NCBI GenBank assembly: GCA_965649825.1
Contig: OZ287697.1
Span: 707,635-771,634 of the forward strand
Source of the DNA: Penicillus capitatus
Taxonomy: Eukaryota; Plantae; Chlorophyta
Direction of reading: 5' to 3'
Length of the DNA: 64,000 nt
The position numbers were made by a program, and so were the translations under genes. The notes under the pieces are model-generated. The model saw only the letters and a program-made list of their open reading frames with translations. It had not been told where the DNA came from and did no database searches. Every line of letters starts with the position of its first letter. The stretch's first letter is position 1. Positions 8,105 to 47,114 of the stretch are shown one piece after another.

Positions 8105-10272
8105 TCAATAGTCCGTCTTGGTGTGATGCCATCGGAAAACTGCCGAGATGGCAGACGATAACGTTATCGATGTGCATCTCTCCACAACACATGCGACATG
8201 TCCGTCTGGACGCACGACGACAGCACATGTCTTTGGACCGCTGTTGCCTGGGATCAACACCCGACCGAGGTCTTCCCCTTCAAACAGTCGTATTGCCCCA
8301 AGCACCGTTGAATCCTTCATTTCTGTAACATCGACCAGACGAGAGAACGGAACGTCGTGTGCTTCGGGGACCACACGGTCATCGCTCTTCCCTTCTGTAG
8401 GAAGCAGCAGAAGAGCATGGGCCAATGAAGCCGCTTCTGTTTTTGCCAAGGCAGACAGAAGAGCCACACATGTCTCTCTCTCGAAACCGATAAGAAGAAC
8501 AAGGCATTTGATGATCGACCAAGAAATGATATCCAGCGATGACACTACACGACCAGACGGACACAGCCTCAACCAAGTGTGAGGTAGTCGACCACCAACG
8601 ACGATTCTCGGAACAAAAGGCGTCGAACGTCCATGCCGTCGACGAGACTGATCGTCGACATTGTCGCCTGCCTCGGGAGGAGAGGCATAGACAAATCCGA
8701 GATCCTCTTTGGGAAATTGCAATCGCAGTAATCGACCTGATGCGAACATCTCTTGCACCTTCTGCCGCCTCCATGGAGCCAATGGCCCATGGTACCCACT
8801 CAAACGACGGCCTAAACGGAACAGCGTCAGCACGGCTGGCGAGCGGTTGTTTGCAGGAGCGACCGAGGCTGAGTCCTGACTCCAGAATGGACTTTGTCAA
8901 ACTCCTCGGCGCAAAGCTGCCAAAACTCTGGGCGATTACATTGCTGAATAGCGAAGCATGTTGAGGATCGAGTCCCAGTGCAGCGGGAATCGACGCAGCC
9001 TCTTTCCAGTTCTCGACACTCAGTTCAGCATTCCGCATCACGACAGGACGCCTTTCGTATGTGTAGGAAGACAAGAGATGTGCCGAAGGGGCCACATTCT
9101 TGATAGTGGCCGCCAGTTTCCACGCCAAGTTATGCGCATCCTGCATCAAATCCAGCATATCCAACGAACATACCATGTAGAGATATACCTGAATTCCGGT
9201 GTTCATACCGAAGCCTCCTGCTGGTGGGAAGACATGAGCTGCATCTCCCGCAATAAAGATATGTCCTCGTTGAAATGCATCCAGAGTGTTCGCTTTCATG
9301 ATCCATGGACGAACGGATTCGATCTGCGCGACCCGATGAGTCGACAGCTTCGATCGGCGAGCTTTACCCGGACATCGTTCAGCGGAAATCCGGCAGCGTG
9401 TCGGATCAGATCTGCACAGTGTTCGTGATCGAAATCGGATGATCGCTGAATCGGTGGAAAGAAAGGAATCTGCGCCACAAATTCGCCATCGTCCAGACAG
9501 TGCACGACAAGAACCATAACGACATGAACATTGAAGACGAAATAGAGCATCGCTGGATTCTCGGCAAGCGATTTTGCCAGAGCCTCTGAGTGGAAATGGA
9601 CACTGAGCAGGTTCTGAATGGGTCCTGTTCCTGAAGCCAATCCACCTCAGCAGCAGAGATGCCTGGATCACATGACGGACCTCGATGTGTGAGGCCTTGT
9701 TGTCGAACCAAGTGTGAATTGGCTCCATCGGCCAATACGACAAATTTTGATGTGACGTTTCGGTGGCGGTGGTCATTGTCTGTCGCATACGTCGCTGTCG
9801 CCCCTTCTCGAGTGGAAAGACAAGAGTGCACATGACTGGAGAATTGGACATCGACGTTTGGGCAGCGCTGTGCGCGATCGAGCAGCAGCGGCAGCAACTT
9901 GTTCTGAGAAAGATGCGCCACAGGTTCTGGCGAGAGATCTGTATACCGCGATGGCTGTCCACAGAAATGATCGACCTCTCCAAAGGACCCTCCCTGTAAT
10001 GTCTCGGTGTAGATGAATTTTCGCCACTGATCTAAGGGAGGCGTTCGCTCGGTGATCTCCTGAGCGAGTCCATCCAACGGCCGAAAGATCTCCATGGACC
10101 TCTGATTAATAAAATGCGCTTGAGGGTGACACGGGAGCGCCTGTCTCTTTTCTAAGAGGAGGACGGAGATATCATAGGATCCGAGTAGATTGCTGAGAAC
10201 GAGGCCTGTCGGTCCGGCGCCGGCCACCACGACGTCATAATCTGCAGCAAACAGTCGAAATAGAGGGCGCAT
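8105..10272 (-). CDS. FAD-dependent aromatic monooxygenase (PheA/TfdB, FAD_binding_3 family)
   Basis: VVVAGAGPTGL Rossmann motif, VVLADGANS, IFIAGDAAHVFPPAGGFGMNTGIQ, DAHNLAWKLA, C-terminal VVVRPDGHVA. Several ~50-nt introns. Confidence 0.92.
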
Positions 10273-10301
10273 TTCAGGTCCGCCGTCATGTCGCGTTCAC
10301 G

Positions 10302-11895
10302 ATGCATCGAACGGCTCGCTATTTGGCTATGACGAACAGAGGCATGCGTTTTCTGGACAGCTTGGTCAATTTCGAGCTCCGCACTCTGCCGGATCAAACG
10401 AATCCGAAAGAGGCGTTTCCGATAGAACGCATGAAAGACTTCCTGCACAATCTGGGTGATCCTCAGAAAGAGATGCGAGCCATACAGATCGCCGGAAGCA
10501 AAGGCAAAGGATCTGTGGCGGCGTTTTTGACGTCCATGTTCTCAGCCAGCTCTCTGAAGGCCGGATGCATCACAAGTCCTCATGTGATTCGTGTCAATGA
10601 ACGAACAGCCACGACGACTGATGGACAGGACGGCGTCGTGCAGCCGATCTCGACAGAACAACTCGATGCCCTGCTCACGGAACACAGGTAATCATCAGAT
10701 CTTGTTCACGATAGGATGCCGATGATCTGTGCGAATACCGGAGGCCTTTGATCGAGACGATGATTCAGGAGGGGCACGAAATCACCTACTTCGAAACGCT
10801 CGTGGCATTGGCCCTTGTGCACTTTGCTCGATCGGGTATAGCGCACGTCGTTATGGAAACGGGGATCGGTGGCGAGACAGATGCGACCAATTGTTTTGAA
10901 GATGGACAAGTGGACGGCACCGTTCTATGTGCGATGGAAGCAGAGCATCTGGGAATTCTGGGTGACAATCTGGATGACGTCGTCCGGAACGAAGTTTCCA
11001 TTACCAGACGTCACCGTCCGGTCATCGTTGCCCCTCAGCACACCACAGAAATGCAGCATCGAATTTTCGAACTCTGCCGTTCAAGAGAGTGTCTATTGTG
11101 CGACAGAATCGACAAGATTGTCGTTAAGCACCGATCGTATCGAGAGATAGAGACGACGATGGTAGAGGAGCTCGATATTCAGATCGACAAATCGCTTGTC
11201 GAAGGCGCAGATGATCTGGTGTTTCACGGCGTCCAGTCACGCCTCATTGGCCAACATCAACATCAGAACATACGAACGGCTCTTTTTGCAGCTCTGGTGG
11301 CCGATCTGCAGAAATGGCCGTTGACAGAGCAGGCGATGAAGCGTGGAATAGAAGACGCTTTTGTCCCGGGCAGGATGCAGACCTTCAGGGCATCGCCCAA
11401 TTCGGAGTGGTTCCTCATCGATGGCGCTCATACAAAACACGCAGCGAGATTCTTTGCGCAGCTACTGAGGACACTCTTTCCCAATGAATCCATCGCCCTC
11501 GTTCTGTGCATCGGAAAGGGCAAACAGTATGGCGAGATTCTGAAGGAGGTCATTGCAGTGCTTCCAGATGTTGTCGTCCTCACCACCTATCCCCTCGCCA
11601 AGTTCCTCTCACCAGGTGGCTTTCTCTAATCGCTGAGTGGCTGGTCTTGATGAATGCAGGGGAGTTGTATGCTCACTGGGAGGATTGTGAGACACAGTTC
11701 CGTCGACAGCAGCCATTCCGTTGCCGAAAGATGATCGCGGCAAACATGGCCACGGCCATTCTTCGAGCGCGACAGGAACTGAAAGGCGTCCTGAAGCCGA
11801 ATGCGAAATCTCCGGGCGTGATCGGTGTGACAGGATCTCTGTACGGTGCAGGAGTAGCGTTGAGTTTTTTGGAGGATGAACGAAATGACGCGTGA
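10302..11895 (+). CDS. Folylpolyglutamate synthase / dihydrofolate synthase (FolC family)
   Basis: IAGSKGKGS P-loop, TSPHV, TYFETLVALA, METGIGGETDATN, PGRMQ, IDGAHT, VTGSLY. Two introns. Confidence 0.92.
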
Positions 11896-12254
11896 GGCGT
11901 ATGACTGATCACCCAATAGACATTTTGGAAGGCGCCCTTCATATGGACGCAAGAGATTCTTTTTCCCGCATGCATACATCTCCATCTGTCACATCAATCT
12001 ACCACCATGGCACACAAAATCCATCCGCAGACCTCTCCTCAACCACTTGACATACGGCAACGGATGCATTCCATGGAAATGGACGACATCGCGGTATCTC
12101 CATATCGTGTCTGCCGTCGAGGCATAGAGAAGTGATGTGACGTCGCCTCTCTCGAATCTTGGTATGTTCAGGGTGGGAGGGGTACGTCACAACGATCTTC
12201 AGAGTATGACATGCGGGCGCAGGTTTCGGAAGTGACGTTTCGCGTACGGTAAAA

Positions 12255-12833: not shown

Positions 12834-12897
12834 CACTTCATTTTCGTCTCTCCGTAGACATGAATGCCGATTTCGAGACGCCTGTAAAAGACAACAG

Positions 12898-13524: not shown

Positions 13525-13538
13525 AATGATAGGGTAAA

Positions 13539-16500
13539 ATGCAGAACAGGCGCATCATCTCGTGCGCAGATCGAGTTGGATGCCTCTGTCGACGTCACAT
13601 CACGCGTTCGGCAGTAGAGATGTCGCAGGTGTCTTTTTTGGCACGTGGCCAGCGTCACGTGATCGATCGCCTTCGTCGGCGTCATCCCTTGCCCCTCACT
13701 GCTTTCCCTTTGCGCTTTGCTGTCCGTTGGTGTTCGGCGACGCGAAAGGACCAAGGCAACGGGATCTTGACCGATGACAAGGCACCTGTCCAGTCCATGC
13801 CTGCGGACGCACGGACTTATTGGCAGTCGATTCTGGACACCATCGAATCGCCCGTCGCACAGCGCATGATCGAACAACTCGACATGGAGAACGTAACGGG
13901 ACTGCCAGATGTGTTGCCCAAGCGTCCGAATTGTTTGGACTTCCACCGCGAGGTGAAGGCGCAGCATCCAGATAAGCTCGTTCTGATCCAAGTTGGCGAT
14001 TTTTATGAGACCATGGGGCACGATGCCGTTCTTTTGGTCAACGGATGCGGATTGGCACCTATGCTGCCGAAGAATGGGATACCTCTCGCTGGCTTTCCCA
14101 TTGCAAATCTTCCAAAAATGCGAAAAATGATCGTTGAGCAGTTGCGGCTCTCAATGGTCGTGTGCAATCAATACGATCTCGCTAAAGATGAACGCCATGG
14201 TAGCTACACCAAAGGACGACGTGTATCCGCCATCTACCATCCAGGGGATCAGAGCTACGCTGTCGCGCTGGATAATCCTTCGCCATCGGCTGTCACATCA
14301 ACTGTGTGCTTGAGCTGGGAAAGAGAAGGCTTCAGCATCGCAGAGTTTCGTACGGACCGTGCGAAAGTCCGAATCGCATCTGGGATGACACAGGATGCTA
14401 TGTGGGGACAGTTGGCCAGTCGTTCAGTGGCGGCGCCCATCTGCATCCACACATCTTTTGCAGAGCGTGTCCCCGATTGGCAAAAACGTCTTAAACGTGT
14501 GATGCCTCACGTTGCGAATCGCATTTGGAAATTCGAAGCAGAGGATCCAGCAGCAGCGTTCCTTCAGTTTCTGGAGCAGCATCAAAAAACGAAGACAGAG
14601 CTGACGATCGATCGGCTGTCCCATCAAAAGAGTAAGCGACAGAGATGTCCTTCATTCTACACGGCATCGCAGTTGGGCATGGCGGGAGGAAACGGAATTC
14701 CAGACATCTTGAGCTTCATCGTCCCTCCGGATAGCCTCTCTCCTGTCAAAGAGTGGTTCCGAGATCTCTTGCTGGTGCCGAGAGGGCAAGAGACAAGCTG
14801 TATCATTCAGAAAGCGCTCAGATGCATTGCAGGAATATCAGACTCACTCCCCCCGATGCGCACCTACCTTTCACCTGGAGGCGTGGCAAAGGCGAGAACG
14901 TATTTTTCGAAACAACAGATGTTAATAGAGATGTTGTAGACCTTTGAAGATCCGACACTGACACCAAGTTTCTTGAGAAAAGTACATGGACTGTTGACAG
15001 ATATCGTCGATCTTTTTCAGACAGAGTCTCTGCATGAGTTTGCCACCACACTGCTGCATTTGGTAGAGCTGGAACAGGAAGTCTCTATCGATGTGGACTC
15101 TTTTCACGATCTCTGTTGCCGGATGCAGACAGCCATTGAAGAGGTGGAGCAAATATCTATCAAAAACTGCCGATGCATCTGAAACAATGCTCTAGGTTAT
15201 TGTGCTCGACATTTCCGAAGCAAAGAAAGAGACTGAAGAATCGATCTCGGCGCCAGAAGAAGCATGCAATCAGCTTGCCGAGATCTGTGAAGATTTTCAT
15301 GGCATTGTCCATGATCGACACCTTCGACAGGAGCTCGAAAATCTACGACAGCATAGGGAGGCTGTCTGTTGTGCTCTCTTCGAAATTCTGGAGAGACTCA
15401 GTCGCCTGAACGACGCTGCCTACATTGCAAGAGAGGTAAAACTCGAATTGGATCGATCCAATTCGACTCTATACCTTTCACTCCCTGTCGCTCTCATGAA
15501 GCATCCAGACATCGGCACCGTTGGTCTCATCCGACCACAGTGGTCGTTGGGTGGCAAGAAAACCAACAGACACTACTACTCGACAAACGATCTGGAATTG
15601 GCCATTCTTAACTACAAGGAATACTGTGCTGGCATCTCATCCAGAGTAACCGCACTGTTGCGGACCTTGACAGAGCAGTTAAGTTGCTCGACCTTAATCC
15701 AGGCATGTCGTTTGAGCATTTGTGCTCAGTCGCTGATCCAGCACAGTTGGGAAGCACACGATCGTCATTGGTGCATGCCTGTCTTGTCAGACACATCCAA
15801 GTCTCTCAGCATCACGGGTGTTTGGCCGTACTGGATGGATGGGAGCCACGAGAAAACAGTAACCAACAGTCTCGAACTGAAGGACATGGTGCTTCTGACA
15901 GGACCCAATATGGCAGGGAAATCCACTGTTCTGCGTTCGGTAGCAGCTGTGTCTATGTTAGCATTGGCAGGGCTCTATGCACCAGCAGAGGCAGTGCAGT
16001 GCCCTCTGCTCGATTATATCGTATTGCGTTCTTTTTCGGGCGACAGTCCTTTTGATCAGCACAGTGGCTTCTCCATGGAGATGGCCGAAATGCGACTGGC
16101 TGTTGAGCAGTGTACAGATCGGAGTCTGATTCTGATCGATGAACTCGGCAAAGGAACGGAAGTGAAGACAGGCGGCGGACTTGCTGGGAGTCTCTTGGAG
16201 TATTTTGCAAGCAAAAAGTGCATCGGCATCTTCTCTACGCATCTCCACCTGATCAAAACGATGCCCCTCAAGATGAACGGCATTTCTCTCATGAAGATGA
16301 ACACGAATGTCATCGAAGCTGAAAAGAAAGAGGATCTAGAAATGCCACTGGAGAAGATCTATGCCCCGGAGTGGACAGTCACATCAGGCAAGCCATACCG
16401 GATGTGTTGTAAGGGTAAGATGGGTGGCATTCAGGATACAATGCATGCAGTCTGTCTTTGCAAGTGGCTTGGCAATGTGGTTTGCCATCGGCCGTTGTGG

Positions 16501-17109: not shown

Positions 17110-17110
17110 G

Positions 17111-17272: not shown

Positions 17273-17283
17273 CTCAATGCGCG

Positions 17284-21099: not shown

Positions 21100-21164
21100 G
21101 ATCGCCCTTAATGCATGACATTGTTGTCGCTCTGTGACGAGTACCCGTGATCTCTGTGTTTATC

Positions 21165-22440: not shown

Positions 22441-22527
22441 GGGGCAGCGGGCCGGCCGGTTTCTCGTGACGGTCGTGGGCCGTGGAGGCGCCTCCGTTTT
22501 AAACAGAAGCATCGTACAGCGTTTCTG

Positions 22528-30213: not shown

Positions 30214-31326
30214 TTATGCGTATCTGCTGTTTCGCGTGGCCATGAGCCAAGGTGGCCCATGTGCTTTGTGGTGGGGACTGATTTCGACGACCGGTCCTAG
30301 ATACAGTCTCCAGACATCCAACAGAATCGTCACAAGCATTCCGGATGCCAAACTGCTGAAGATCGCCTCACCCAAAGACCATTTGACAGATGGATCTTCA
30401 TCCATACGAAAGAAGACAGGGAAGGAAACAAAGAAATAGATGGCGTAGAAGAGAGCACCCACACGATACATTGGAGCTCGATCCACAAACGAATAGTAGG
30501 GATACTAGACAGACACAACCCGAAAAGAGATCGTTGAGTGAGAGCATATGACTGTACCTCTTCAATGGTGTAGGTCTCTGCATAAGCTGCAAAGTAGGCA
30601 AAGAGAAAGACGACGATGCCTTCGCCCACATTCTGTGCCCATGAGCCGTTTCTTTGTAACCTTGTCCTTACCTGGTCACATCACTCTATCCCCTGCTGTC
30701 ATCTCACTTTTGCCTTATACTTGGCGAATGAGCATGTTGGAAAGAGTGTGATACAGACAGAAGTAGGCATGTGTGATGAAGTACATACAGATGGGCACCT
30801 GCCATGCATTCAGTCGACGTCGAAACGTTCCATCTGATGTGACAGGTACCTGGTTTAGATCCCATGTCTGCATGGTGTATGAGGCACCCAAGACTTGATA
30901 GAAGTAATGCGTCCAGAAATAGTTCCCGATGAAGCTAAAGACAGCCATCCACGCATTGGCCTAAGCAGCAGCACAGATCCTCCAATCCAATACACCTGAC
31001 GACCGAAGAGGGATGCACTTTGACCCAGTATCTCTGAAAGAACGGCTTCTCTCGATCAACCTTGGGATTCCAGATCCAAGGAAAACAGAAACAGGGCGCT
31101 GCAATGCTGAGGCCAAAGAACAGGTATCCCCATTTCGTCAGTGCCTGCGCCGTCCATGCGACAAGAGTCCGATCACCAACACATGCCAAACTTCATAGAG
31201 CTGAAAGATCACAACGACGGCCATGCTGGTAATCCAGACGACGCTGTAGGCCAAAAAGAATGCCTCACACCATCGTTTACTCGGATGGCGAGCCAGCCAC
31301 GTGCAGGATGGCCCGTTTTCTTTCAT
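30214..31326 (-). CDS. CPI1: Cycloeucalenol cycloisomerase (cyclopropyl sterol isomerase)
   Basis: WLARHPSKRWCEAFFLAYS, RYWVK|ANAWMAVFSFIGNYFWTHYF..LGASYT, AYAETYTI, GALFYAIYFFVSFPVFFRMDE, EAIFSSLASGMLVTILLDVWRL. Confidence 0.95.
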
Positions 31327-31391: not shown

Positions 31392-33713
31392 ATGATTATC
31401 CTCAACGGTCGAGTGCTTTCTCTAAGACACTTTGCGCCATTGAGAAAACTTCGCAGCGTCCGACTGACGGCATCGCTGAGAGTTCGATGGCCAGGACCTC
31501 TCCACCGAAAAGGCTGTCATGAACAGATACGCTTTCCTTCACGAGAGCCTCTCACGACCTGTCCTGTGAGACCAGGTAGTCAGTCACTGAGCATGATGTG
31601 ACAGGAGGCAAAGTGTCACGATCATCTAGTGTGGATCTGTGCTGCCGCAGCTGATGGGAGTACCCGGAAAGATTCGTCCTTCTTGAAACGGATCCTCAAG
31701 CGGATTCTTTTCTGGATCTGTTCAGCCGCTTTCTTCCTGGGACTGTTCATCGCTGCGCTGCCAACACTGATCTCGACATCTCTGGGATTGGGAGCTGCGA
31801 CGATGGGGGTCAATATGCTCATGCCAGGTGGGTCTGCTTTTTGGAAGGAGGCTGTGAGGAATGCCATCAGGACTGTTGGAGGTTCAGAAGGTATCGACAG
31901 GTTGGCGCAAACCGCTTCACATCGAAGGGATCGTCGTGAAAGACGGCACCAAGAAGCTCGTCCCTGTGGTGCAGATCGAAAAGGTGACGACATCCAAGAA
32001 CTTGATCGACATCATCAAAGGCATGCCGCTCTTGGGGAAGAGCAGAGTAAAGGAATGGGCTTTAGGGGAGAGATTTGAAGTGTTTGTTCTGGGCCCCACC
32101 GTCAATGCGTTTCCAGATGATGTAGGAACGATTCCGATCCTCCGTTTCGCCAAGAAGACAGGAATCCTGTCGAAGCAAGAGAAACAGGATGATGTGACGG
32201 GCGCTGCTCTGAGCACAGACGCAGGAAACAAAAAGCGCGCGGTGGTAAGGACGAAGCATTTTGAAGAGTGGATGGTGAACACAGGTGCATGACCAGTGCC
32301 TCCAAATACACGACATCACATGGCTATGGTTTTTGTGATGTGACAGCTAAGAAAGCCAAGAAAGAGCCCAAGCCCTTGTTGCGTTCCTTTGTACAGACCC
32401 ATATCAACATGACGGCGGAGATCCGGTCCAAAGGCATTAGTATTCTGGTCAATAATGGCAAAGTCTTGGTCACACGAGAGGCAAAGTGAAGGCATCTGGC
32501 CGTCTTCTGTGATGTGACTGAGGACGGAGATGGTTAGATCCCTTGTCGGAGATTACATGCACTGGATCGTGGCTCATGGCGATGAGGATGTGCGCACCAT
32601 CTCAGAAGATCTTGATCTGAGCACAGATTGGATCGACATGTACGATGAGGATATGCAGGATCAGGATGAAGACATCGAGGCCGATCCCGTCTTGCTCAAT
32701 GTCGATTCGCCCAACATCTCGAGCGACGTGAGAGGATGGAAAGTGCAGAAGAGGCTTGAACTGGAGCGACCGGGCAAAGCAGCCGTGTCTGTGACGCCTG
32801 CCTTTTCACGGTGGGTCCTGCCCGTCACATCTGCCTTCTCCATGCCGTTTTGTGCATCAGGGAGTGCTTAGCTTTGCTGAATCCGCTGCTGAATAATATG
32901 GTGGCGATGAAGAATGGGTCGAAAGTGAATGTGGAGATGACGAGCAAGACCATGAGTTTGCCATCATCAATCGTCGATGTTCACATTCAGCCCATTCGTC
33001 TCCTGGCTGGTCCTGCGCCGTTTTGGGACTCCTTGCTCAATCTGCTTCGAGTATTGGACGAGCAAGAGGGTCATGGATGACAGTGACGTCATGTCGGTGA
33101 TGTAGGTAAAGGAGAAAGGCCTGCTGCCAGGACAGCAACTTCAGGTGTGGACATCGGCCGTCGATTGCGCCATTATCAACACAGAAACGGCCAGATGCAT
33201 TCGGTCAGACACTGCACCCTGCGTCCAATAACAGACAGGTGGCGTAGGTGTGATATGCTGTTGGGCCCTCCGAACAAAGGCGTCCACGTTGTGGTGTGGG
33301 GAGACTGTCAATTAGACACGGAGGCACTGAAGATGTGGTTAGGCATTCCTGCAGACACTCTTATGCGCATCGGCTACAAAAACCTCAGTCCAGACTACGT
33401 GCTGCCCATTCCATTGCGAGGTCGATCTCCTGTTCTCACACATCCATTGCCTCATGATGGCAACTTAGGGACGGTTGAGAATCCATATGTGGATTGGGAT
33501 GGGGCATTCAACGAGATCCAGAATCTCATGTTCAGTCAACTGATTGGCGATGTCCCTGCGGAGGAAGCAGAGGGATATGAGGGATATTGGAAAACAAGGC
33601 TGTTAACAGCTGCCAAGAAATCGGCATTGCAAACGAAAAAGAATGATCCCAAAGCATCCGTTCCCATGCAAACACATTCGCTTCCTTGGGACGATGGCAG
33701 CAACGAAGGATAG
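31392..33713 (+). CDS. Probable plastid-targeted AsmA/TamB-like (beta-groove) protein
   Basis: Transit-peptide-like N-terminus; single TM (AAFFLGLFIAALPTLISTSLG) followed by alternating beta-strand pattern (LLEVQKVSTGWRKPLHIEGIVVKD); C-terminal VWGDCQLDTEALKMWLGIP..VLPIPLRG..VDWDGA resembles AsmA-like C-termini. Family call is from memory of the pattern. Confidence 0.55.
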
Positions 33714-33738
33714 CCATTTGGCGACGATGGACGGACGC

Positions 33739-34860
33739 TTAGCGGTCGTTGTGTCTCTTGTAATCTGGCATTAGATGAGCGATGTTGCTGAGCAGCGTTG
33801 CCAGCGCATTGAAATCCAACACTTTGGTCAGGAGCCTGAAACCCACTGCAGTGCTTCCGTAGTCTGCCCAGACCGTTCGTCCAATACAGGCCGTGACTTG
33901 ATCCGGAATCGACGTTGGACTGGCCGCGAATCTCTTGAAGAAATCCAACATGTCGATCTTCTTCTGATTGTCATAGAATCGAGAGGCAATGGGCGATGGA
34001 TGGAAGACCAACACATCGATGCCGTGCGATTTGACCTCTGCTGCAAGAGAGGCACCAAACATCGAAAGAAAGGACTTGGTCGATGCATACAGTATACTGA
34101 ATGGACCCGGCATCGCACTGGCTGGCGATGATGTATACACAAAGCAGCCCTTCATTTTCTTATCCCTCTGTACAAACACAGGGGCTATGGATAGGCGGCC
34201 AAAGCGCAGACGGATAAACCATTTTGGAGAGGAAATGATGTGTGATAGACACCGCTGATGTGACATTGCAGTCTAGATTGTCCAGCTGCTGCTTCATCGT
34301 CCTGGATGCCACAGCCTCTGTCTATTCCGTTGGATCGGGACGTCATTACGTCGAATGGAAGAAACCGGTGACGAGATATCCTGCATTGCAGAAGATGATC
34401 TGCACATCGATATCGGCCGTTGCCTCGATGATCGCATTCAGATAATTATTGCCACTCAAATTCACGCCGACCTGCCCCCACAGCCACACAGTATCTTTTC
34501 CGCTGTATGACAGAATGTGTGCACGACTTTGCGGATCTGGATCTCTGGAAAGGCCGATTTCATGTCATCTTCTGTATTGTCGAGTACGGAGTCGGGATAG
34601 GCAACGATCACGACATTGAGTCCTTGACTCGCCAATGTCCACGCCAACGATTTGCCAATTCCTTCACGCACACGCAACGTCACGCCCACGTGCGTCGTTC
34701 GCGCATCTCACCCGAACTGCCACCCGTGACGAGCGCCCAACAAGCGCCGTACTTTGTTTTCAGATTCTGTGGCCGGTAAACATACGCGATCAATATCTGG
34801 CCGGCGACATACAGTCCGATATTCAGAAAGAGACAGCCAAAGAGGAGCGCGAATAGCATG
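33739..34860 (-). CDS. Membrane-anchored short-chain dehydrogenase/reductase (3-ketoacyl-CoA reductase / 17beta-HSD-like)
   Basis: N-terminal TM, WALVTGGSS|GIGKSLA (TGxxxGxG), QGLNVV, YASTK (YxxxK), HGIDVLVFHPSPIASRFY. Alternative start at 34940. Confidence 0.9.
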
Positions 34861-35210
34861 GCGAAGAATGCACGCGCGCAGTAACGGTTGACCGGGCCGC
34901 GTCTAAGGGAAAATGCTTGGAGCGTCGGTTGGAATGCCATCTAGGCCTCTATTTTCTCAGGCCTATTCATCAATGCAGGTTTCTTTGCATTAACCGTCAC
35001 TGCATCTACACGAACAGTTTCACAACACCGCGCATTACGTGCGGCATTAGTTGACTTCATCCCTTATCAGTTAAGAAGCCGCCTTCTCGCGGACCTGTGC
35101 ACCATTTTCGCATTTGAAGCTTTTAGCGCGTGGGATTCTTGACGTTTTTGGGTCGTTGGGAAGGACGTGCTGCATTTACAAACGGTTGTCCTTCGGCGGG
35201 ACCAATCGCA

Positions 35211-37105: not shown

Positions 37106-37835
37106 CGGCCATTATTTCTTTGCTCTCCCCTTCGTATGCTCGCAACACGACGAGCACCTCATTTCATTACCCTTATCGTTAACTATTATGGTTTTGCATG
37201 TGTTTGTTCCTATTATTGTTGACTGTTGTATCAAGAGCTGATTTTACGTGCTGATGTTAAGAGTAGCTCAGCTGTCGCATTCTCACATTATTACCACTGA
37301 TCCCTATACTGCATGGATCATTCAATTTGCAGGAATGGTCCGTATCTATACGAGGCGCTGGAGTCTACGTATGGCTGGCGTCGTTGGTGTTGTCGTTATG
37401 AAACTACAAACCTTGAAATGCGAATAAACTTTTGGCGCACAGTAATGAAGCTGAAAACATGAATACTGTAGACCAGTGGTGGTGATCGTAGGTAGCTTGG
37501 CTGTTGTACAGCAAAGCAGAAACACAACCTCCGAAACAGTTTTCGCCTGTTTTCATTCCCTAACCCACCTCTGATGAAATACTGTGCTGTCTTTACTGAC
37601 CAAGATTTCATAAAGTAATAAGACCTGTATCCGGTATCGGCTTTTCCATTCAAACACACGAATCCTACTCGCAACATCGTCTTGTTATTAGATATCAAGC
37701 GAAATCCACAAACATCATCGGTCCGCAGCAACTCGTCAGATAAAAATGCATAGCCATGAACACGACGCTGCCGTGTGCTGGACAACAGATCTTTGGATCG
37801 ACAGACGGAAGGAATCCATGTCCGCAGCTGCTCGC

Positions 37836-38976
37836 TTAGGCTTTCCTGAACTTCTTAGACTTCACTAGAAATGCAATTCTGCCGTGGTCGAGTGTCGGCA
37901 AGAGTGTCGATAGACGTCTTACGCGTTTTGTTAATCCAACGGCCGAAAGCGGCGAGGTCCATGAAGACGGCTGCGCCCTGTTCGTCGCAATTGCCCGTGG
38001 TGTAGGACACAATGCCAATAACCTCTTCGTAGAAAGCAAACAGTGAACTCGGGGGTACCATCAGCGGACCGCCATCGTCGCCTGATGCGCCGCCGTTATC
38101 TTCCGAATCCGACAGCGGAAGGATGTCTCACCCGAACAGACGCTGATGCTCGTCTCGCCCGTGAAGCAGATCTCATTGTCTCGCACTTCAATGTCATTCT
38201 GCTGCGTGCAGGTGTCGTTGGGTACGAAAGAGAGCGGCGAGATCTGGAGAAGATTTGTGTAGGCACCTGCTTGGCCACCACGACCGTAGCCAAAAAACTG
38301 AAGCGACCCTTTCTTCTGGAACTTCCGATTGCCAATGTTCGCAATGGGCATCAGGCACGACTTCTTGGCGAGCTTCAGAATCACGAGATCATGTCCATCG
38401 CGAATATCTCCCGTCCATTTGGGATGAGGAAACGCACGGACCGTTTCGAGAATCTGTCCATCCAGGAGCACCGCGTTGCCGCAACGGCACAGAGGAAGGG
38501 AGGATACCTCGATGGGTGATTCGAGACTGGTGCCGCCAAGATGGACTTGCGGTTGGACGATAGCTTGACGCGTAGCTCTGGGATCCACACAGTGTGCCGC
38601 AGTGAGGACGGCGTTCTCGGCGATCAAGATACCGCCACAGATGTGCTTCTTTGCCAGCGTTCGATCTCTGCCTCCACGAAATGTCCCATCCAACATCTTG
38701 CTCTATACAATGCAATGGCCGCACTTGATCGAAGCGATGAAGGGAAAGCGGCCCGTTCGTTTGCAAGAGAAGACGGTAGGTTCAAACATCGTCGCCATGG
38801 GAAACCTCGTCGGATACGCTTCGTCCAAGAGTTGGCGACCAGCTGTCAAAAACACCGCTCTTTGTGCCGTCCTGTCATAAGCGTGTCTGACTGTGGTCTA
38901 GGAAAAGGGTGGCATCGATGAAGGTGATGCAGGTCGCCGCTAAGCAGAGGAGCATCCATTTGGTGCCGGATGACAT
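37836..38976 (-). CDS. Secreted trypsin-like (S1A) serine protease homolog; catalytic Ser replaced by Asp
   Basis: Signal peptide MSSGTKWMLLCLAATC; GRFPFIAS, HICGGILIA, VLTAAHC, HDLVILKL. Spliced active-site segment reads CS|GDDGGPLM instead of GDSGGP. Confidence 0.9.
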
Positions 38977-39463
38977 TCTTAGCAGCAAATCAGCGAAATG
39001 CGTCGTCCGATATTGCGGATACTGTACCAGAGGGCGGCAGATGCGGAGGACAATGGACGGTAGATAGAGTGACGGTTAGAGAATGCCTGGAGGCCTCGCG
39101 TTTCTTCTGTTTTTCTTGTTTGACGACTCATGATGTCATTTCATGTTTGATCAAGGCAGCGACAAATGCTCCCCATCAAAACGTGAGCTGCTGCGATTTG
39201 TGCCTCTGAACGCGCATCGGTCTTCCTCAGCCACGAAACGGCGCTTTTCGGCATATTTAAGAGTGAGAAACGACCTCTTTGCGATTGCGGTCCGAAAGTC
39301 GCCTCCAAGAGCTCCTTTTTTCGCCAAACCAGCTCGTTCGCGGTTCTTAACGAAACGCGTCACGTTTCGAGCGCCTCGCCGTATCTCTGAGGGCGACTGT
39401 CAAGGGCGTGTTCGTTTGTTCGCCTTCTGGGCTTGTGTGAGAAAAGAGTGTGACGTAGGGACG

Positions 39464-41699
39464 ATGTTTTGGAAGGTCACCGGGTTCTCTATGACCTCTC
39501 CGATCGATACAATCCTGGAGAAGTCGCAATTTACATTAGAAGAGCTTCTGAAGGAAGACGATTTGATCCAGGAATGCCGATCCCTCAACGGCCGCCTGAT
39601 CAATTTCTTGGCAAGCAAAGAAAACGTCGAGGCCATGTTACAGCACATGCTGCATCTGCCATCATCACCACATCATCCCGAAAAACAGGTCACCGTTGAA
39701 GCAGTCAAGCGCCTTTCCTGGCAGTCCTGTGAAGTCTTCTGCTGCGAAGTGGATCCGATCTTCTCCATCTTGCTGGAGAACGAAGATACGATGCGTCTGT
39801 TTCTGAGTATAGTGGATTCCAAAGAGGCCATCGATGCCACCACCGCTGGGTACTTTGGAAGAGTCATGAATCACCTCTTGTTGAGAAGACCTGTCCAGAT
39901 CACACACTTTCTGACGGAACATCGACAGTACATCGTGAAGTTCATTGATCATTTAGAAGACACGTCCATTGCTGATGTGACCGTGAAGTTGTTGGGTGCT
40001 GACGAACAAACGAATACCCAGCTGCCAACAAACTACATCCACTGGATCTCGCAGACGGATGCACTGCAGCGCGTTATTGCTCGATTGAATGCGTCCGAAA
40101 CGATGAGTGTCCAGAGAAACGCTGCCCATGTGCTGATTGCCATTATTCGGTCGCAGCCGTCTCCACTGGCAAGAGAACTGGCAAGTGGGGAGAATCTCCA
40201 ACACCTGCTGCAGCATGTCATGAGTGACGATGGGGAGGTCTCCGTTCCCATCCTCAATGTCATCATCTCTTCGCTGGATCCCAGAAAACGTCCACTCAAT
40301 GGACTGCGCTCGCTGTCAGCGACGGCAAGCTATGACGACATCGTGGAGAGCAATCTGTTTCAGCAACTGTCGCAGAAACTGACAGCACTGTTGCCACGTC
40401 TCGGGCAGAAACTGAGGCAGAGTCCTCAGGGAGAGCGCCAGAACACCCCTTACGGTGCCCTGGTTCCTCCCTTGGGCCCAGCACGTCTGAAAATCATAGA
40501 AGTCTTTGCCATTCTGATGAATACGAGATCGGAGGCTGTTATGCAAGGATTAATGGTATCGCAGACAATGGAATCGTGTATGGAGCTCTTTATGAGCTAT
40601 CCTTTCCACAATCTATTGCATCAGAATGTCCTTTCCATCCTCACAAATGCCCTCGCCTTTGAGTACCAGCCTTTGCTGGAATTGCTCTTTCAAAAGCTTA
40701 AACTCTCTCAATGGATCACACAGTTGCCACTGACGATCACCTCGACCAAAACAACTCTCTACTCGCCTCGCAAATCGCCATTGCTGGAGAATGGATGCTC
40801 TTCGGAAGAGGAGACACTCGAGAAGACACAGGAGGCCCTTCGTGTTGGCTACATGGGTCATGTCATTCTTCTGTCAAATCAAATCATCCAAGCTGCTAAG
40901 ACAAACACATACATTGCAGCGCAGTTACGCTCCGACAGCAGTTGGCAGACGCATGTATCGACAGTGGTGCTGCCGATCAATCTGAAGGAGGATCTGAGTT
41001 CATGGGAATGCGGTCGTCCCCCGGAATTGGCACTCAAAGATACTGTCGATGATCACGGGGACATCACTCTGCCGTCCTCTTCCAACGGCACCTGCTACAA
41101 AGGGAACTTCGGTAATTCCAGCCACGGCATTTCGCCTCTATGCTTGCTTGGATGTGCAGAGGATGATGATGAAGAAGACGAAGATGAAGAGGGGGACGAA
41201 GCGGGGGAGAGTATTGGCCTTCAGTGGAGACCAGATGTTTTAACATCCGAAGAGGGAGAAGTTTCAGGAACGGTGGCCATGTTCTCGAGGATGGGATTAC
41301 AGGAGCCAAAATCCATTGCCCAGAAAGAGATGTCCGATTCAACCTCCAGCAGCAGCAACAGCACTTCGTCCTCATCGAACAGCTCATCAGGTGCATCATC
41401 CACATCGAGTGAGGAAGACGGAGCGGAGGGGGAGGAAAGATTGATCATGGTTTCGCCGCAAGCGTTATTGGAGAGTCTGTCAAAGGAGCACAGCACAAGT
41501 ATAGAGTCCTCGTCATTCCTTGAGCCAATGGTGCTGATAGAGGACGGGTGGTTGTGCAGATGATGAGAGAGAGAAGACAGAGAAGGAGGCGAGCACTTCT
41601 GAAGCTGTCGAGGAAGAGCCGTCAGGGCTCGATGCCTTTAGCGCCTATAATTTCTGGAAACTGGATATATCCGATGTCGATTTGTTGCCTCCGGAATGA
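39464..41699 (+). CDS. SIT4/PP6 phosphatase regulatory subunit (SAPS family)
   Basis: MFWKVTGF..SPIDTILEK..FTLEELLKEDDLIQECRSLNGRLINFL, AGYFGRV, PPLGPARLKIIE, YPFHNLLH, RVGYMGHV, acidic tail, terminal AYNFWK exon. Confidence 0.95.
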
Positions 41700-41892
41700 A
41701 AGTGCGTGTCTTTTGGTGAGGGAGATCTGCACGTATCTCCCAGAGATTGATTTATAGAACGTGTCTTTACACTGTTTAAATCATCCGAACAGTCATATTT
41801 CAAACCATCCGTACAGTAGCCTCACATATTCTGCTAGATGCCTGCTCAGCTCACGCAGCTTCATCTTCTGATTCTGACACAGATGGATCGTA

Positions 41893-43377
41893 TCACACGC
41901 GCATTTTTTCGAATTCGGTATGGTCGGGGTAGGAGGGGAGATAGGGTAAGGGATCTCTCGGCGGTCCTCTGCAGAACTTGGCGTGGTGGACGATGTACAG
42001 ATCTTTAAGTGGATTGCACAGTCCGGCGCATTCGTTCCTCAAAATCCCGATGGCTGCTGAGGAGCATCGTGTGGCGCAGAGTCGCATGTCTTCAAAGTGT
42101 GTGACGTTCTGCCCCAGCATCCAAGAACCAACGGTTACGTCTTCATTGGCAAAAATCCTCAGCGTGTGAAAGTTACGCAGAATTACGTTCTCGACGACCG
42201 ACTTGTGCATCGCATAGATACTCCCGTAGGCATGGAGGTAGTAATCGGAGCCGAAGAGAAGGTGCTGCGGTTCATACCAGCGTGAATCTTCTGTTGTCCA
42301 GACGTGGCCATGTTTCATGCAACCCACATACGTTGCTCCCATTTTGTCCCATTGCTTCATCGCCAGCAGTGTCCTCTCGATCATGTAATAGACATCATCA
42401 TCCACCTTGACAACCCAGTCTGGATCGTACAGAGACATAGCCGCCGCAAAGAACGTTTTGGTTTTGTTGGTCAGTCCATAATACGATTCCTAAACACACA
42501 ATACCCACATCAGCCTTCTACCATTGGACACATGGGGTCAGACGGTGATGGGTAATCGCAAGAAGTCCTGGTACGTTGCTTCCTCTTCGTTCAGAAGCTG
42601 CTGCTCCTGTGGATCCGCAGAATTACCCGCAATAAATCGCACCACGATGCCTTGCTCCTTCTCCAATCTATGCATTCATATGCCGCAGACATGAGCATTG
42701 GCGGCGGGAGTGTAAGAGGGATGGATGACCTGGTTCGTTCTTCGACGGTGTCTGGAAACCACGTCTCTCTCAGGACTTGACGTCGTCGTCGATAATCGTA
42801 CCGCAGTTTCTGTTCTTGACTTTGATTCTCTTTCCTTCCCGCATCATTAATTCCCGTCTGGCAGCAAAACGAACATAAGAGATGGAATGCACCCATGAAA
42901 CGTCATTCTCACAAAGACGCCGACAAAGAGGCGAATTTTGGGTCGATCGTAGTTCGGCACCGTATCCACGTTTTTTGCCTTTTCGATCGCCGCCGTAATG
43001 CGGCCACTCAACTTTTCAGCTGCATTACCATCCGACCCTGTCGCACTTCCGCCGTTGAAAGCGTCTATAACGGTGCGGAATTCTCCCTTGAGCGAGACAA
43101 GGACTTGCGTGAAGGTCGTATTCGTCACGCCGTCTCCTCCCACGAGCAAAGCATCAAGTTTCGTTTCAATCGCTTTCAAATGTCCGAGGAGTTGTCCTTC
43201 GACCATCAGACTGTCCGGCGTTGGACATGGACCAAACCGACGGTCGTTTTGACTGCCGTACCCAGCATGACTCGAACGCGAAATAATAAAGTGAAAGATA
43301 AGGGTCAACGAGGCAAGGCCCACTAAAAAGAGCGATGAGACGCCGCGTGACGCGCGCGAGGATGGCGGAAGACGCAT
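41893..43377 (-). CDS. Beta-1,3-galactosyltransferase (GT31), type II membrane protein
   Basis: N-terminal TM and coiled coil; VVKVDDDVY, YVGCMKHGHV, WYEPQHLLFG..YYLHAYGSIY, FANEDVTVGSWMLG. Confidence 0.93.
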
Positions 43378-43612
43378 CGTGCGGGAATCGGAAAAGCAAC
43401 AACAATGACGTCACCACAAGAGATGATGACATGCATCATCATCATCGTCGACTGCATTCCCCCTGCTCATGTTGCTCATTCCATCCATTCCTCTGCGTTT
43501 CGAGGCGTTTGGCGATTTCGAGGGAGGTACGGTGCCGTTGCTGGACGCGTGCCCGACGACAAGACGTCTTGTAGCTGAGAGCTGTGAGCGATTTGACGTG
43601 TGGCCTTGTCCG

Positions 43613-45855
43613 ATGGTCTGGTGCGCACACTGCAAGACGGACGTAACCGCCGAAGATGACTATCAGGCTGGATACTCGTGAGAAACATCGTACTTTTGCG
43701 TCGCACTCGCATTGAGCATCGTCCTCTGCATTGGATTGACGTCCGTTGTGCGATAGGTGTTGTCCACTCTGCGGAGCGGTGCTTGTCGAAGGGACGTACG
43801 AAAACGCCATTAGTTTTGGAGAAGAGGGCGGTATGATTGGCCAGATCCTCTCCGATGAGAAAAAACCGCAACAGGGAGGGGGAACGTCGGAAAGGGGTTT
43901 CCACGAAATCTCACTCCTCGTCGACCAGCTCAGAATTCACCCACGCGACGACACGATCGACGCGGCGCTTCGACTCTATAAGATGGCAGTCCATCGTGGA
44001 TTCCTCAAAGGACGTCGTTCCAGTCAAGTGCAACAACGCTTCTGTGTGTACCATGGTCCGATGTCTGGATCCAGGTCGCGGCGTGCTGTATCTATATCAT
44101 GTGCCGAACGGATAAGCGGCCTTATCTCCTGATCGATTTCTCCGATGCGCTGAGGGTGAATGTGTACGTGCTGGGATGTGTGTTTCTGGATTTGTGTTAT
44201 CTGTTCAAACTGGATGAACATCCCATTGTGCTGAGTCCTGTCGATCCATCGCTGTTTATACATCGATATGTGGATCGACTCAACTTTGGTGGCAAGGCAT
44301 CAGCCGTGACTCAGTCGACACTGAAGCTTATTAAGAGTATGAATCGAGATTGGATTCAGACAGGACGGAAGCCGTCAGGAATCTGTGCAGCTGCACTGTT
44401 CATCGCCTCACACATGCACAGTGAGAAAAGACGCCGCATCGAAGCGTACAGGCAAGGACGGTTTGGATGATGAGGTTTGTGTCTGGCCAGATGTGCCCAA
44501 GATGAAGAGAGATATTATCTATGTGGCGAGAATTGGTGTGTCGACAGTGGCAAAGCGTTTGACAGAGTTCTCCAAAACGAAGCCTGGGAAGCTCAATGCC
44601 GAGGAGTTCCATCAAGAGGCGCTCAAAATGGAAAAGATGGAACAGGCATTGTTGACGCATCCCATCGATGCTGTCACATCCGAAAGCTCCTCGCGGTGTC
44701 ATCACTTGGAGAACGGGGCAGGGGCTTTTGCATGTGGCATGTGTCGAAACTGCTATCTACAGTACTTGACAATCTCGGGTGGCATTTTCGAAGGAACTGC
44801 CGATCCACCTGCCTTCGTCAAGTCTCACTCTCTCACAGAGAAACTCATTTACATATCCATCTTTTCAGAAATGTCAAGAAAAGGACCATGAGTGTTGGTC
44901 GGATCTTTCGTCTGGCCAACGATCTTGAAGTGGATGAAGAAGAGAGGCGCGTTTTGGACCAAGAGATGCGTGAAGCGCCAGGTATGATGCATCTTGACCG
45001 GCATCGATGGCGTGACGGTGCGTGCTGTTGTAGCGGTCGAAGAAGTGGAGGCCGAAATGGACAATGCATTGTCGAGCGAGCAACTCCATCCTCTGTTGCA
45101 AACGCCGACAGAAGACTGGTCTTCCCTTGTCGAAACACCCGTTTCCAGACCAGTGATCCCACCTGAAACGCCATGCCGTCCTTCTTCTGGTCCCGTCGGC
45201 GAAGCGCTCCTAGGCTTCAATCAAGAAGAAGAGTTCGAGGAGGATCTGCCTTTTGATGATGAAGAAGACGACATGCCAGTGGACGACATCAGAGGTTTGT
45301 CGCCGTTTCTTCTGCCCATTCCTTCACCTTCGGCAGCAGCAACCGTAGGAGCGGTGATCGAAGTGGATATGCTAGAGGACATTACAGAAGAGGACATTGC
45401 CGATTACATCTTGCCACCAGAAGAGGTAGAACAGAAGACACTGTGGTGGAAAGAGCTGCACAAGTCTGCCCCTGATCGCATGGTCATCTCTGTTTTGAAA
45501 GGGCCTTTCCTCAAGGGAGCATCTGAAGAAGGCGGCCTTGCGGAAAGAACGTCCTGTCGAGAAGGACAAGAAACGAAGACGATCGGTCAAGAAAGCACGA
45601 ACGAACCCACAAGAGTACTCCAGTGCCTTCGAGGCGGTCAAAGGCATGTTGGAAGAGAAGGGACTGAGCTCCAAGATAAACTATGATAATCTCGAGGCGC
45701 TCTTTGCGGAAGGATCCGAAGAGACTGCTGCACCGGCGCCGGCAACACCACAGCCACCCCGAAACGACAAGAAAGAGAGCTTCTTTCTGCGTTCCCTTTC
45801 GTTTCGAAAAGCGGAACGGCGGCCGAAGAAACGATTGGATGGCTTATTTGACTGA
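43613..45855 (+). CDS. BRF1: TFIIIB subunit BRF1 (TFIIB-related)
   Basis: Zinc ribbon MVWCAHC...|CCPLCGAVL; GFLKGRRSSQ|VAACCLY, YLLIDFSDALRVNVYVLG, VDPSLFIHR, DWIQTGRKPSGICAAALFIA, KRLTEF; C-terminal SSKINYDNL. Confidence 0.95.
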
Positions 45856-45904
45856 CCCACGGCGATCGATCTCAGGCAGTCATGTTATTTCATCGGAAGT
45901 ATTT

Positions 45905-46819
45905 TTAGATAACAAAGTAATCTGTTTTGTCGATCTGTTTTTCAATTTTGGTCGCCTTTTCGGCCGAGATGCCCAACATCTCACGCAGTTGTAACAGAGT
46001 GGCATAGTCTGGCGGTACTTCGGCATTCCGCAGATGTATGCGATAGAGGCCTTCCAACTACATCAGACCAGACACTGTTGATGTGACAGCACGTCACATT
46101 ACGGTCTCACATCTTTTGGTGAATTTTGGGCAAGGAGGAGTTCTGAACGGCAGATTGCATTCTCTTTCAACGCGCGTTGTAGTTCCACTATCACCCTGCC
46201 CTTACAATGCTGTCATGTCAGCAAAAGAGTGAGAGATCTCGACCTTGCAGGGGCACTGGCATTCATAAAGCCGATTGCGCGGTGGACATAGATCGATTGC
46301 CGTGTCCGGGCCGCCGCTCTTCGATAGGCCTCTTCACCATTCTTTTGTACATCAGACATGTCACATCAAACAGAAATGTGAGATCTTTACCACAATGTCG
46401 TCCGCGACAGAGGGACGGAAACGTTCTCGGACAGGATTGTAAAGTAAGGCACCAAGGACCAACGCTGCCAAGGGCAAGAGCCAATTCATGGTCACACTGA
46501 AACGTCACATCTCGATAGCATTCGAAATGGGACGATGCGACCGCTGTTGCGTGGGAGGCGGCATGACGGGAGGCTTGCTCTCCACTTGAGTGTGATAGAC
46601 CTGTTGTCCCTTGGCGGCTACTGTGCCCAGGGATCGACGTTGTCGCGTCTCTCTCCCTTCTCTTCTGCGTTGTTGCAGTGCCGTCACATCAGACGTTTGT
46701 CTCACTCTATTTCTACAGTTTCGCACGAAAAGGCCGAGCGCCTTCCATTGGCCCGAGAGAGCCGACATTGTGATCGGCATCATCATGAATGGCAAGCAAA
46801 TGACATCTCGTTGCATTCC
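45905..46819 (-). CDS. Conserved-looking membrane protein, probably plastid; function unknown; start uncertain
   Basis: Spliced segments NWLLPLAALVLGALLY, RAVIELQRALKENAICRS and LEGLYRIHLRNAEVPPDYATLLQLREMLGISAEKATKIEKQIDKTDYFVI* look like a conserved green-lineage protein. Four intron-sized gaps. Confidence 0.6.
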
Positions 46820-46867
46820 TGCCGGCGCCATTCTTTTGCCATGCCTCAACCACGTCGACGTCCAGAA

Positions 46868-47114
46868 ATGAGTCTGCCGAAGGGAAAGAAGCAGAAGACG
46901 ACGACGAAGTCCGATTCCATCATAGACCGTCTGCGGTCTATATACAAAACTCAATGGGAAAACGATAAAAACCGAGCAACCAACAAGGCGCTCTCCACCT
47001 CTCTGCTTTCACTTACCTCACTGTCACATCCTTCAGGTGCTCCTCAAAGCTCTGAGCATGTTTGTTGGTGGAGTCATCGCCTATCGTACAATCGGCGATT
47101 CGCTTTTCATTTGA
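46868..47114 (+). CDS. TOM5: Mitochondrial import receptor subunit TOM5 (plant type)
   Basis: With a 49-nt GC-AG intron (46988-47036): MSLPKGKKQKTTTKSDSIIDRLRSIYKTQWENDKNRATNK|VLLKALSMFVGGVIAYRTIGDSLFI*, matching the plant TOM5 pattern N.KLLRALGMFAGGV..R.YGD. TGTAA near 47160. Confidence 0.8.

Follow-up and report, generated by a model that had tools for sequence, protein, structure and literature searches.

In a 64,000-nt stretch of DNA (contig OZ287697.1, positions 707,635 to 771,634; hereafter 'the window') we found an octamer, GATGTGAC on the + strand or its reverse complement GTCACATC, in 29 exact copies (15 on + and 14 on −; exact search of both strands over the whole window). The word is strongly enriched, very sharp and strand-symmetric; its copies fall into several location classes, are conserved in a relative, were gained in one lineage and cluster at the scale of genes. 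We tentatively characterize it as a putative double-stranded-DNA binding site of a sequence-specific regulatory protein, a reading to which we give a little less than an even chance.

In an unbiased k-mer ranking of the window GATGTGAC/GTCACATC was the first 8-mer; the first 9-mer was TGATGTGAC (23 copies) and the first 10-mer TGATGTGACA (13 copies). Uniform composition predicts 1.95 octamer copies and a 3rd-order Markov model 4.0; 100 dinucleotide shuffles gave 3.67 ± 1.70 copies with a maximum of 8, none of them reaching 29. The expectation of a 5th-order (hexamer) model is higher, 9.0, because the word itself inflates the hexamer counts; with the word's own copies masked it drops to 2.2. 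Enrichment is therefore ∼15-fold over the uniform, 7–8-fold over the low-order and 3-fold over the hexamer background. A first-pass annotation of this DNA had claimed >10-fold enrichment, which agrees with the figure for uniform composition, and had listed 27 positions, all of which are exact matches; it overlooked the copies at 39974 (+) and 55470 (+), the second of which lies within an interval, 47.1–60.8 kb, that it had described as empty. The word has a density of 0.45 exact copies per kb and touches ∼40% of the window's genes; three further copies, all TGATGTGAC[A/G], are situated in the 10 kb past the right edge of the window (same contig, ENA ERZ25074695 ctg340516, 1.46 Mb). Four forms of the word, searched as whole words, were present in none of ∼8.3 million full texts. 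Thus, in line with the annotation, which did not recognize it as a described algal motif, the word appears undescribed, while the kind of element is already known.

Alignment of the flanks of the 29 copies showed T at position −1 in 23 of them, A (15) or G (10) at +1 and G (16) or T (9) at +2; outside −1 to +2 the flanks share no information. The full word is then T-GATGTGAC-[A/G]-[G/T], i.e. TGATGTGAC[A/G][G/T], 9–11 bases long, with a consensus that can be parsed as T-GAT-G-TGAC-R-K. AG directly follows the octamer in nine of the 29 copies, and two extended forms, CTGTCACATCA and TGATGTGACAG, are reverse complements of each other. Each of the 24 possible one-mismatch variants occurs 0–7 times, i.e. 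at the background level. With no shared flanks and with variants at background, we deal with a very sharp word of 9–11 bases and not with a repeat family. A structured RNA was discarded as well: no Rfam family matches anywhere in the window, and the introns are too short for snoRNAs, though the word resembles a C box.

The window's open reading frames (ORFs) are eukaryotic and split by introns of ∼50 nt. Genes were modeled with a small purpose-made finder for tiny introns and then corrected by homology; the finder is crude, it left ∼40% of the window without a model and initially read one in-frame intron as exon. The best match of the BRF1 gene was Caulerpa lentillifera EukProt g280.t1 (62% identity), that of a neighboring gene (31.4–33.7 kb) was C. 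lentillifera g289.t1 (58%), and the next-best matches came from Bryopsis and Ostreobium. Judging from these protein matches, the window is nuclear DNA of a member of Bryopsidales, a relative of C. lentillifera, with local gene order kept. Two loci were available for comparison: L001, from a second assembly (ERZ26696514), collinear with window 7.3–24.5 kb at 83–84% DNA identity, and L002, from a more distant relative (21.5 kb, GC 0.43, MSH1 ∼50% identical), with MSH1, HAT1 and TTL as the genes shared by L002. The copies, given with window coordinates and strand, are the following.

9749..9756, +: exon, antisense to an FAD-monooxygenase gene (− strand); the mRNA has GTCACATC, Val-Thr-Ser (RNVTSKF); L001 has GGTGTGAC
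11988..11995, −: intergenic, 93 nt downstream of the FPGS stop, with 267 nt to the next ATG; conserved in L001
12134..12141, +: 5′ flank of the gene at 12255 (+), sense, with 121 nt to its ATG; L001 has GAGGTGAC
13594..13601, −: 95-bp divergent spacer, −70 from the ATG of an RRM gene and −26 from MSH1; conserved in L001 beside an 11-nt indel
14292..14299, −: MSH1 exon, antisense; VTS in a variable indel-bearing spot (SAVTST vs SA-SS and T--SS in relatives); conserved in L001
16378..16385, −: MSH1 exon, antisense; PEWTVTSG vs PEWIVAPG (L002) and PEWIVTPG (L003); conserved in L001
17562..17569, +: HAT1 last exon, antisense; mRNA GAC ACG TCA CAT CAC, DTSHH, in a variable region; conserved in L001
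18394..18401, −: HAT1 intron (46 nt, starting GTATTGATGTGAC), sense, 5 nt from the 5′ splice site; conserved in L001
19097..19104, +: TTL 5′ exon, sense; Asp-Val-Thr in a variable N-terminal stretch; conserved in L001
19181..19188, +: TTL intron (42 nt), sense, 12 nt from the 3′ splice site; conserved in L001
29915..29922, −: last intron (50 nt, G|GTGTCACATCA) of a starch-synthase-like gene, antisense, 2 nt from the 5′ splice site
30675..30682, −: CPI1-like gene, sense, in the middle of an intron of ∼88 nt (alternatively, two predicted introns that abut)
30836..30843, +: CPI1-like gene, antisense, in an in-frame intron of 51 nt (starting GTACCTGTCACATCAG), 6 nt from the 5′ splice site
31595..31602, +: sense, in the 5′ part of the 31.4–33.7 kb gene (Caulerpa g289 orthologue), where a first intron of 39 nt probably ends, GATGTGACAG|
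32191..32198, +: exon of the g289 orthologue, sense; Asp-Val-Thr in a variable stretch
32337..32344, +: intron of the g289 orthologue (62 nt), sense, with 2 nt between its end and the 3′ splice site, GTGATGTGACAG|
32511..32518, +: intron of the g289 orthologue (52 nt), sense, mid-intron
32824..32831, −: intron of the g289 orthologue (50 nt), antisense, 13 nt from the 5′ splice site
34257..34264, +: exon of a short-chain dehydrogenase gene (− strand), antisense; VTS in DCNVTSAVS
39974..39981, +: exon of a SAPS-domain gene, sense; Asp-Val-Thr
44673..44680, −: BRF1 exon (by alignment to Caulerpa g280), antisense; VTS within a linker that varies
46080..46087, +: small − strand gene, antisense, in what is probably its last intron, with ∼22 nt to the 3′ splice site, as judged from sequence
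46360..46367, −: first intron (49 nt) of the small − strand gene (∼46 kb), sense, as judged from frame and GT..AG
46504..46511, −: 17 nt upstream of the ATG of the small − strand gene (∼46 kb), sense
46683..46690, −: flank, ∼190 nt upstream of the ATG of the small − strand gene (∼46 kb)
47023..47030, −: 169 nt past the stop of a WD40 (U5-40K-like) gene, 6 nt before GTAAGT
55470..55477, +: exon of a large Chlam_PMP-repeat membrane protein gene (− strand), antisense
60874..60881, −: stretch without gene model
61827..61834, +: stretch without gene model

About 11 copies are intronic (seven sense, four antisense); 10 are exonic, three of them sense and seven antisense; the remaining eight lie in spacers, untranslated regions (UTRs) or DNA without gene assignment. 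Transcribed copies (exon plus intron) are balanced, 10 sense to 11 antisense. The density is ∼3.5 per kb in introns and ∼0.3 per kb in exons, a ∼10-fold difference; short spacers are, by a rough tally, about as dense as introns in copy-rich neighborhoods.

Several of the intron assignments have support from homology. The alignment to Caulerpa g289 confirms the word-bearing introns 32288–32349, 32487–32538 and 32811–32860 as well as the exon copy at 32191, and the alignment to g280 confirms the BRF1 exon copy; the sense copy in the HAT1 intron noted in the first-pass annotation was confirmed, too. The 50-nt intron of the starch-synthase-like gene was accepted because it is needed to bypass an in-frame stop. 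The 51-nt segment of the CPI1-like gene (window 30809–30859, − strand) is in frame, and in a library-wide search its homologues lacked exactly these 17 residues; we therefore take it for an intron. The annotation's claim of intron copies in both orientations is thus confirmed by homology for three introns of the 31.4–33.7 kb gene and for the CPI1-like one. Insertions at the CPI1-like site were also seen in two other aligned sequences (P0243 and P0245), and it may be an old intron position; ORF-based callers read through this intron, whereby database 'proteins' carry 17 spurious residues. The putative 39-nt first intron at 31571–31609 (+), whose last 10 bases are GATGTGACAG, would, if real, be among the shortest in the window; the TGA of the word at 31595 is the in-frame stop that this intron has to remove.

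The annotation had named strictly sense intron copies at branch-point distance as the finding that would reduce the word to a TGAC branch site. More broadly, the word might be an RNA-level splicing signal of the tiny introns, either such a branch site or an enhancer of splicing within introns. Seven intron copies are indeed sense, and in those at 19181, 32511 and 46360 the A of TGAC is 13–20 nt from the 3′ splice site, a distance plausible for branching. However, four of the 11 are antisense, including those at 32824 (homology-backed) and 30836, and positions within introns vary: some copies lie against the 5′ splice site (29915, 18394, 30836), some are central (32511, 46360), and others provide the AG at the 3′ end (32337, 31595). 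Distances from the 5′ splice site are 2, 5, 6, 13, 22, 23, 25, 38 and 52 nt; sense copies lie 2 to 33 nt from the 3′ splice site, one of them abutting the 5′ site (18394) and two ending 2 nt from the 3′ site (32337, 31595). Furthermore, 18 copies are outside introns (10 exonic, 8 other), and ∼85% of introns do not have the word. Orientation and position refute a splicing signal as a general explanation, and we give it a very low probability.

In exons the word could be a by-product of codon or amino-acid usage. The predicted coding sequence (CDS; 31.9 kb) contains nine copies; synonymous-codon shuffling gave 2.1 (0 of 300 shuffles reached nine) and shuffling of codon order 1.1, which rules such bias out. 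Along with the figures for the hexamer background this means that the enrichment survives the hexamer/codon check that the first-pass annotation had proposed. The annotation had also read the exon copies as VTS or DVT codons; all six Val-Thr-Ser tripeptides in predicted CDS are written GTCACATC, the three sense copies read Asp-Val-Thr, and the antisense ones mostly Val-Thr-Ser. Exon copies are found in variable protein segments or arose by amino-acid replacement. The MSH1 copy at 16378 was created by a Pro-to-Ser change in a conserved block, giving PEWTVTSG in both the window and L001.

A chance, compositional, codon or assembly artefact has a negligible probability. GATGTG and related hexamers are fairly common in the window, and there is a loose resemblance between the word and both ends of the Tn5 mosaic end employed in library preparation; still, neither the dinucleotide nor the synonymous shuffles reached the observed counts, the masked hexamer expectation is as low as stated above, and copies are present at orthologous positions in an independent assembly and in frame within conserved exons. 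The last two observations rule out a library-preparation (Tn5) artefact.

Conservation of the copies was evaluated in L001, where the first 8-mer is the same word (11 copies in 21 kb). In the span shared with L001, eight of the 10 window copies are identical, compared with 34% of all 8-mers (P = 0.004); the other two are one base off in L001, and one L001 copy is one-off in the window. For non-coding copies the numbers are four of five against 24% of 8-mers (P = 0.014). In the TTL intron no change has occurred in the word's 8 bases, while the other 34 intron bases have nine. Thus, the comparison of orthologous sites shows the word kept above background. L002, in turn, has only two copies in 21.5 kb, which indicates, from these sequences, that the word became abundant in the lineage to which the window and L001 belong; L002 has the HAT1 and TTL introns at the very same positions, but they do not contain the word there.

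These data also bear on a possible origin of the copies as relics of mobile-element or introner ends, inserted either way and creating introns. The mutually reverse-complementary forms CTGTCACATCA and TGATGTGACAG would supply GT and AG, and some copies are exactly at intron ends (29915, 32337, 31595). Yet similarity among the 29 copies stops at 11 bases, L002 has the HAT1 and TTL introns in a wordless form, the CPI1-like intron site has the insertions mentioned above in two other aligned sequences, and exon copies arose by point substitution. With flanks without information and introns that are old, a repeat family or introner was ruled out; we assign this origin hardly any likelihood.

Along the window the copies are clustered at the 2–4 kb scale (variance/mean 1.8–2.4 in 2–4 kb bins, P = 0.003–0.005), and the three longest empty stretches, 8–11 kb each, sum to 28.9 kb (P = 0.008). 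Several genes have two to five copies and many have none: the 31.4–33.7 kb gene has five, four of them in its ∼7 introns, while the kinase, ribosomal protein S8, HAD and BRF1 genes have the word in none of ∼15 introns, and two ribosomal-protein genes lack a copy altogether. Being gene-specific and patchy, the copies are not a universal promoter or intron feature. The first-pass annotation had placed the clusters at divergent gene starts; clustering is real, but only three of ∼8 divergent gene-start pairs have a copy. Two of its further suggestions, a general factor and a displacement of sites into genes as a universal effect of vanishing promoter space, are not supported, given the gene-specific copies, the ribosomal-protein genes without a copy, the small share of divergent promoters and the empty stretches.

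One could speculate that the word is an intragenic expression booster, of the intron-mediated-enhancement type, or a site of a chromatin-organizing barrier factor that phases nucleosomes from linker-sized introns; we consider this an unlikely explanation. Density is highest in introns with copies also in exons and 5′ flanks, several genes are multi-copy, and 21 of the 26 assignable copies are between −300 and +1100 of a start codon. Neighboring copies are often 144–179 bp apart or about twice that (11988–12134, 30675–30836, 32191–32824, 46360–47023), and a periodogram has its peak at 154 bp, near a short nucleosome repeat. The Arabidopsis motif TTNGATYTG, which shares a GATnTG core with the word, could serve as a model; it raises expression additively from introns, 5′UTR or coding sequence (PMC6760150). 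On the other hand, the 154-bp periodicity is not significant against a jitter null (P = 0.06), and we do not claim a nucleosome-length spacing. Distances to start codons span −267 to +2758, with five copies upstream of a start codon and some at +1.2 to +2.8 kb, and as genes are short the 5′ bias is inseparable from a uniform spread. Many intron-containing genes, the two ribosomal-protein genes among them, are without a copy. TTNGATYTG itself occurs eight times in the window with ∼4 expected, not a clear enrichment; the word differs from it in having G at the Y position and no preference for upstream TT, and it is strand-symmetric, a property not reported for the Arabidopsis motif in the part of its description available to us.

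Another possibility, an improbable one in our view, is a hyper-abundant word of the HIP1 or uptake-sequence type, spread by repair or conversion bias, methylation-linked recognition or self-DNA marking. HIP1 (GCGATCGC) and bacterial uptake sequences resemble the word in being exact octamers to decamers, many-fold over-represented and lineage-specific. The extreme sharpness, the exon copies attained through specific codon choice and even an amino-acid change, and the gain in one lineage all fit; the more distant L002 has a hyper-abundant octamer of its own, TCGATCGA. Over-representation in coding as well as non-coding DNA, with conservation above background, also has its parallel in HIP1, described as over-represented and conserved beyond background (PMC5861425). 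Against it, the word is patchy at gene scale, with its three empty stretches, and its spread is neither even nor quasi-periodic; exon density is ∼10-fold below that of introns; and HIP1 is a bacterial palindrome, whereas the word is non-palindromic and has a strong intron preference. Several other words are moderately enriched too, as expected of a compact genome with ordinary factor sites, and we know of no such process in eukaryotic nuclei. It is likewise improbable, to about the same degree, that nuclei of Bryopsidales carry lineage-specific hyper-abundant octamers (GATGTGAC here and TCGATCGA in the relative) owing to a genome-wide process or chromatin need, even at the cost of amino-acid changes. 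If true, a eukaryote would have a genome-wide signal of a new type, a counterpart of HIP1 and uptake sequences rather than a set of ordinary factor sites.

Returning to the site of a regulatory protein, strand symmetry, sharpness, conservation, placement in free sequence and clustering by gene together point to recognition of duplex DNA by a specific protein. The first-pass annotation had proposed a DNA-level cis-element, and balanced orientation, unfixed intron position, the exon excess over the synonymous null and conservation in the relative agree with that. From here on we infer: selection would keep copies as homotypic clusters in and beside a subset of genes, the copies occupying whatever sequence is free, be it tiny introns, short spacers, UTRs or variable codons. 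The word would most likely act as an orientation-independent transcriptional element, from within the transcription unit as well as from upstream.

The most likely binder would be a KNOX/BELL pair (a TALE-homeodomain dimer); this identity is proposed by analogy and we regard it as doubtful. The proposal comes from the layout of the word, two TGAY cores arranged head-to-tail with a 5-bp period (TGATG-TGAC) and often followed by AG, which is like that of TALE heterodimer sites. The family is central to plant development. It is expanded in Caulerpa, which has four genes each of KNOX and BEL (PMC6476727). The closest parallel is green-algal: the zygotic response element (ZYRE) of Chlamydomonas reinhardtii, YGACAYGAC, is without strand bias, can work from within an intron and depends on the BELL protein GSP1; promoters, 5′UTRs and introns in a defined gene set are enriched for it, most strongly at −51 to −100 relative to the transcription start site (PMC4889651). 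ZYRE and the word have in common two YGAY cores head-to-tail, the 5-bp period, the absence of strand bias and multiple copies per gene. Seven of nine positions match the ZYRE consensus and two differ; a variant from the DMT4 intron, TGACGTGAC, is one base from TGATGTGAC. Unlike ZYRE, the word has TGAT rather than YGAC as the first core, G rather than A as the spacer and no degeneracy; it is also far more frequent and exon-enriched. Composite 10-bp sites with two TGAY cores in the same direction are bound by other TALE proteins: TTGACTTGAC by potato StBEL5/POTH1 (PMC3904721) and TGATTGACAG by animal Pbx-Prep (Pbx-Meis/Prep; PMC6023610). The potato site has the 5-bp period of the word but TGAC where the word has TGAT; in the animal site TGAT likewise precedes TGACAG, but with one base fewer between the halves. 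The tandem form TGATNTGAC occurs 25 times in the window with 4.7 expected and canonical YGACAYGAC eight times with 3.3 expected; TGACGTGAC has no occurrence in the window.

Several observations weigh against a regulatory-protein site in general or a TALE site in particular. Transcription-factor sites usually tolerate some variation, while all 24 one-mismatch variants are at background here, and there is no clear enrichment of canonical ZYRE or of other TGAY-TGAY combinations. With 0.45 copies per kb and ∼40% of genes, the word is far commoner than a stage-specific regulon needs, and a four- to five-fold enrichment in coding exons is unusual for a transcription-factor site. Conservation was measured only at ∼16% divergence, where power is low. 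Finally, L002 is without any TGAY-tandem enrichment; if a TALE pair is responsible, the site or its usage must have changed recently.

To our knowledge, the gene regulation of siphonous green algae, which are giant multinucleate single cells, is almost entirely uncharted. A sharp word marking a defined subset of genes and conserved in a relative offers a direct handle on it, usable for pulling down the binder, for defining the regulon across the contig and assembly, and for building expression tools. It also shows how a regulatory word can invade tiny introns, and even codons, where spacers are short.

Other over-represented words were seen as well. The palindrome TCGATCGA has 16 sites in L002:1–21485 (21.5 kb, ∼0.3 expected), including those at 2250, 5106, 8156, 8195, 8354, 8358, 9685, 10260, 10651, 13375 and 13811; some of the sites are exonic (FDR and LDRS codons in MSH1), and four lie a short way upstream of the MSH1 start. 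L001 (five sites) and the window (eight sites: 1271, 2000, 3701, 16528, 18668, 18672, 24538 and 58237) are enriched for the palindrome as well, and its core, CGATCG, is the core of cyanobacterial HIP1. Further words enriched in the window are CATCGATG (10 sites), TCCATGGA (eight sites), CGGAAGTG (11 copies, ETS-like) and ACGCGT (56 against 29 expected), the last abutting the main word at 13594; they look like further factor sites of a compact genome.

As for the genes, those at window 31440–45855 (BRF1 and the 31.4–33.7 kb gene, corresponding to Caulerpa g280 and g289) form a neighborhood that is kept, with proteins ∼60% identical. No Pfam domain is present in the g289 family, whose sole match outside this genome was in Caulerpa; a third protein search returned the Caulerpa orthologue only and no new contigs, and ORFs at the left edge of the window gave no hit when looked up. 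Pfam had no match for the CPI1-like gene or for the 'TOM5' gene either, and the latter label, taken from the first-pass annotation, could not be verified; the identity of the short-chain dehydrogenase gene at the 34257 copy (− strand) is from Pfam.

A 1.8-kb segment is present only in L001 (L001:4713–6540, against window 11996–12030); it carries another copy of the word, at L001:5243, and in the alignment it starts at the end of the conserved 11988 copy. A 14-nt direct repeat, AACCACCCATCGAC, is found ∼10–15 nt past that copy on the left side of the segment and again slightly inside its right edge; we read the repeat as the real boundary and dropped a link between the 11988 copy and the segment. 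There are also internal duplications in the window (24278–25080 and 48762–49507, also 50237 and 62773): L001 segments match both of the first two stretches, and two FAD-linked oxidase-like genes (50.8–52.3 kb and 62.9–64.0 kb) share identical stretches.

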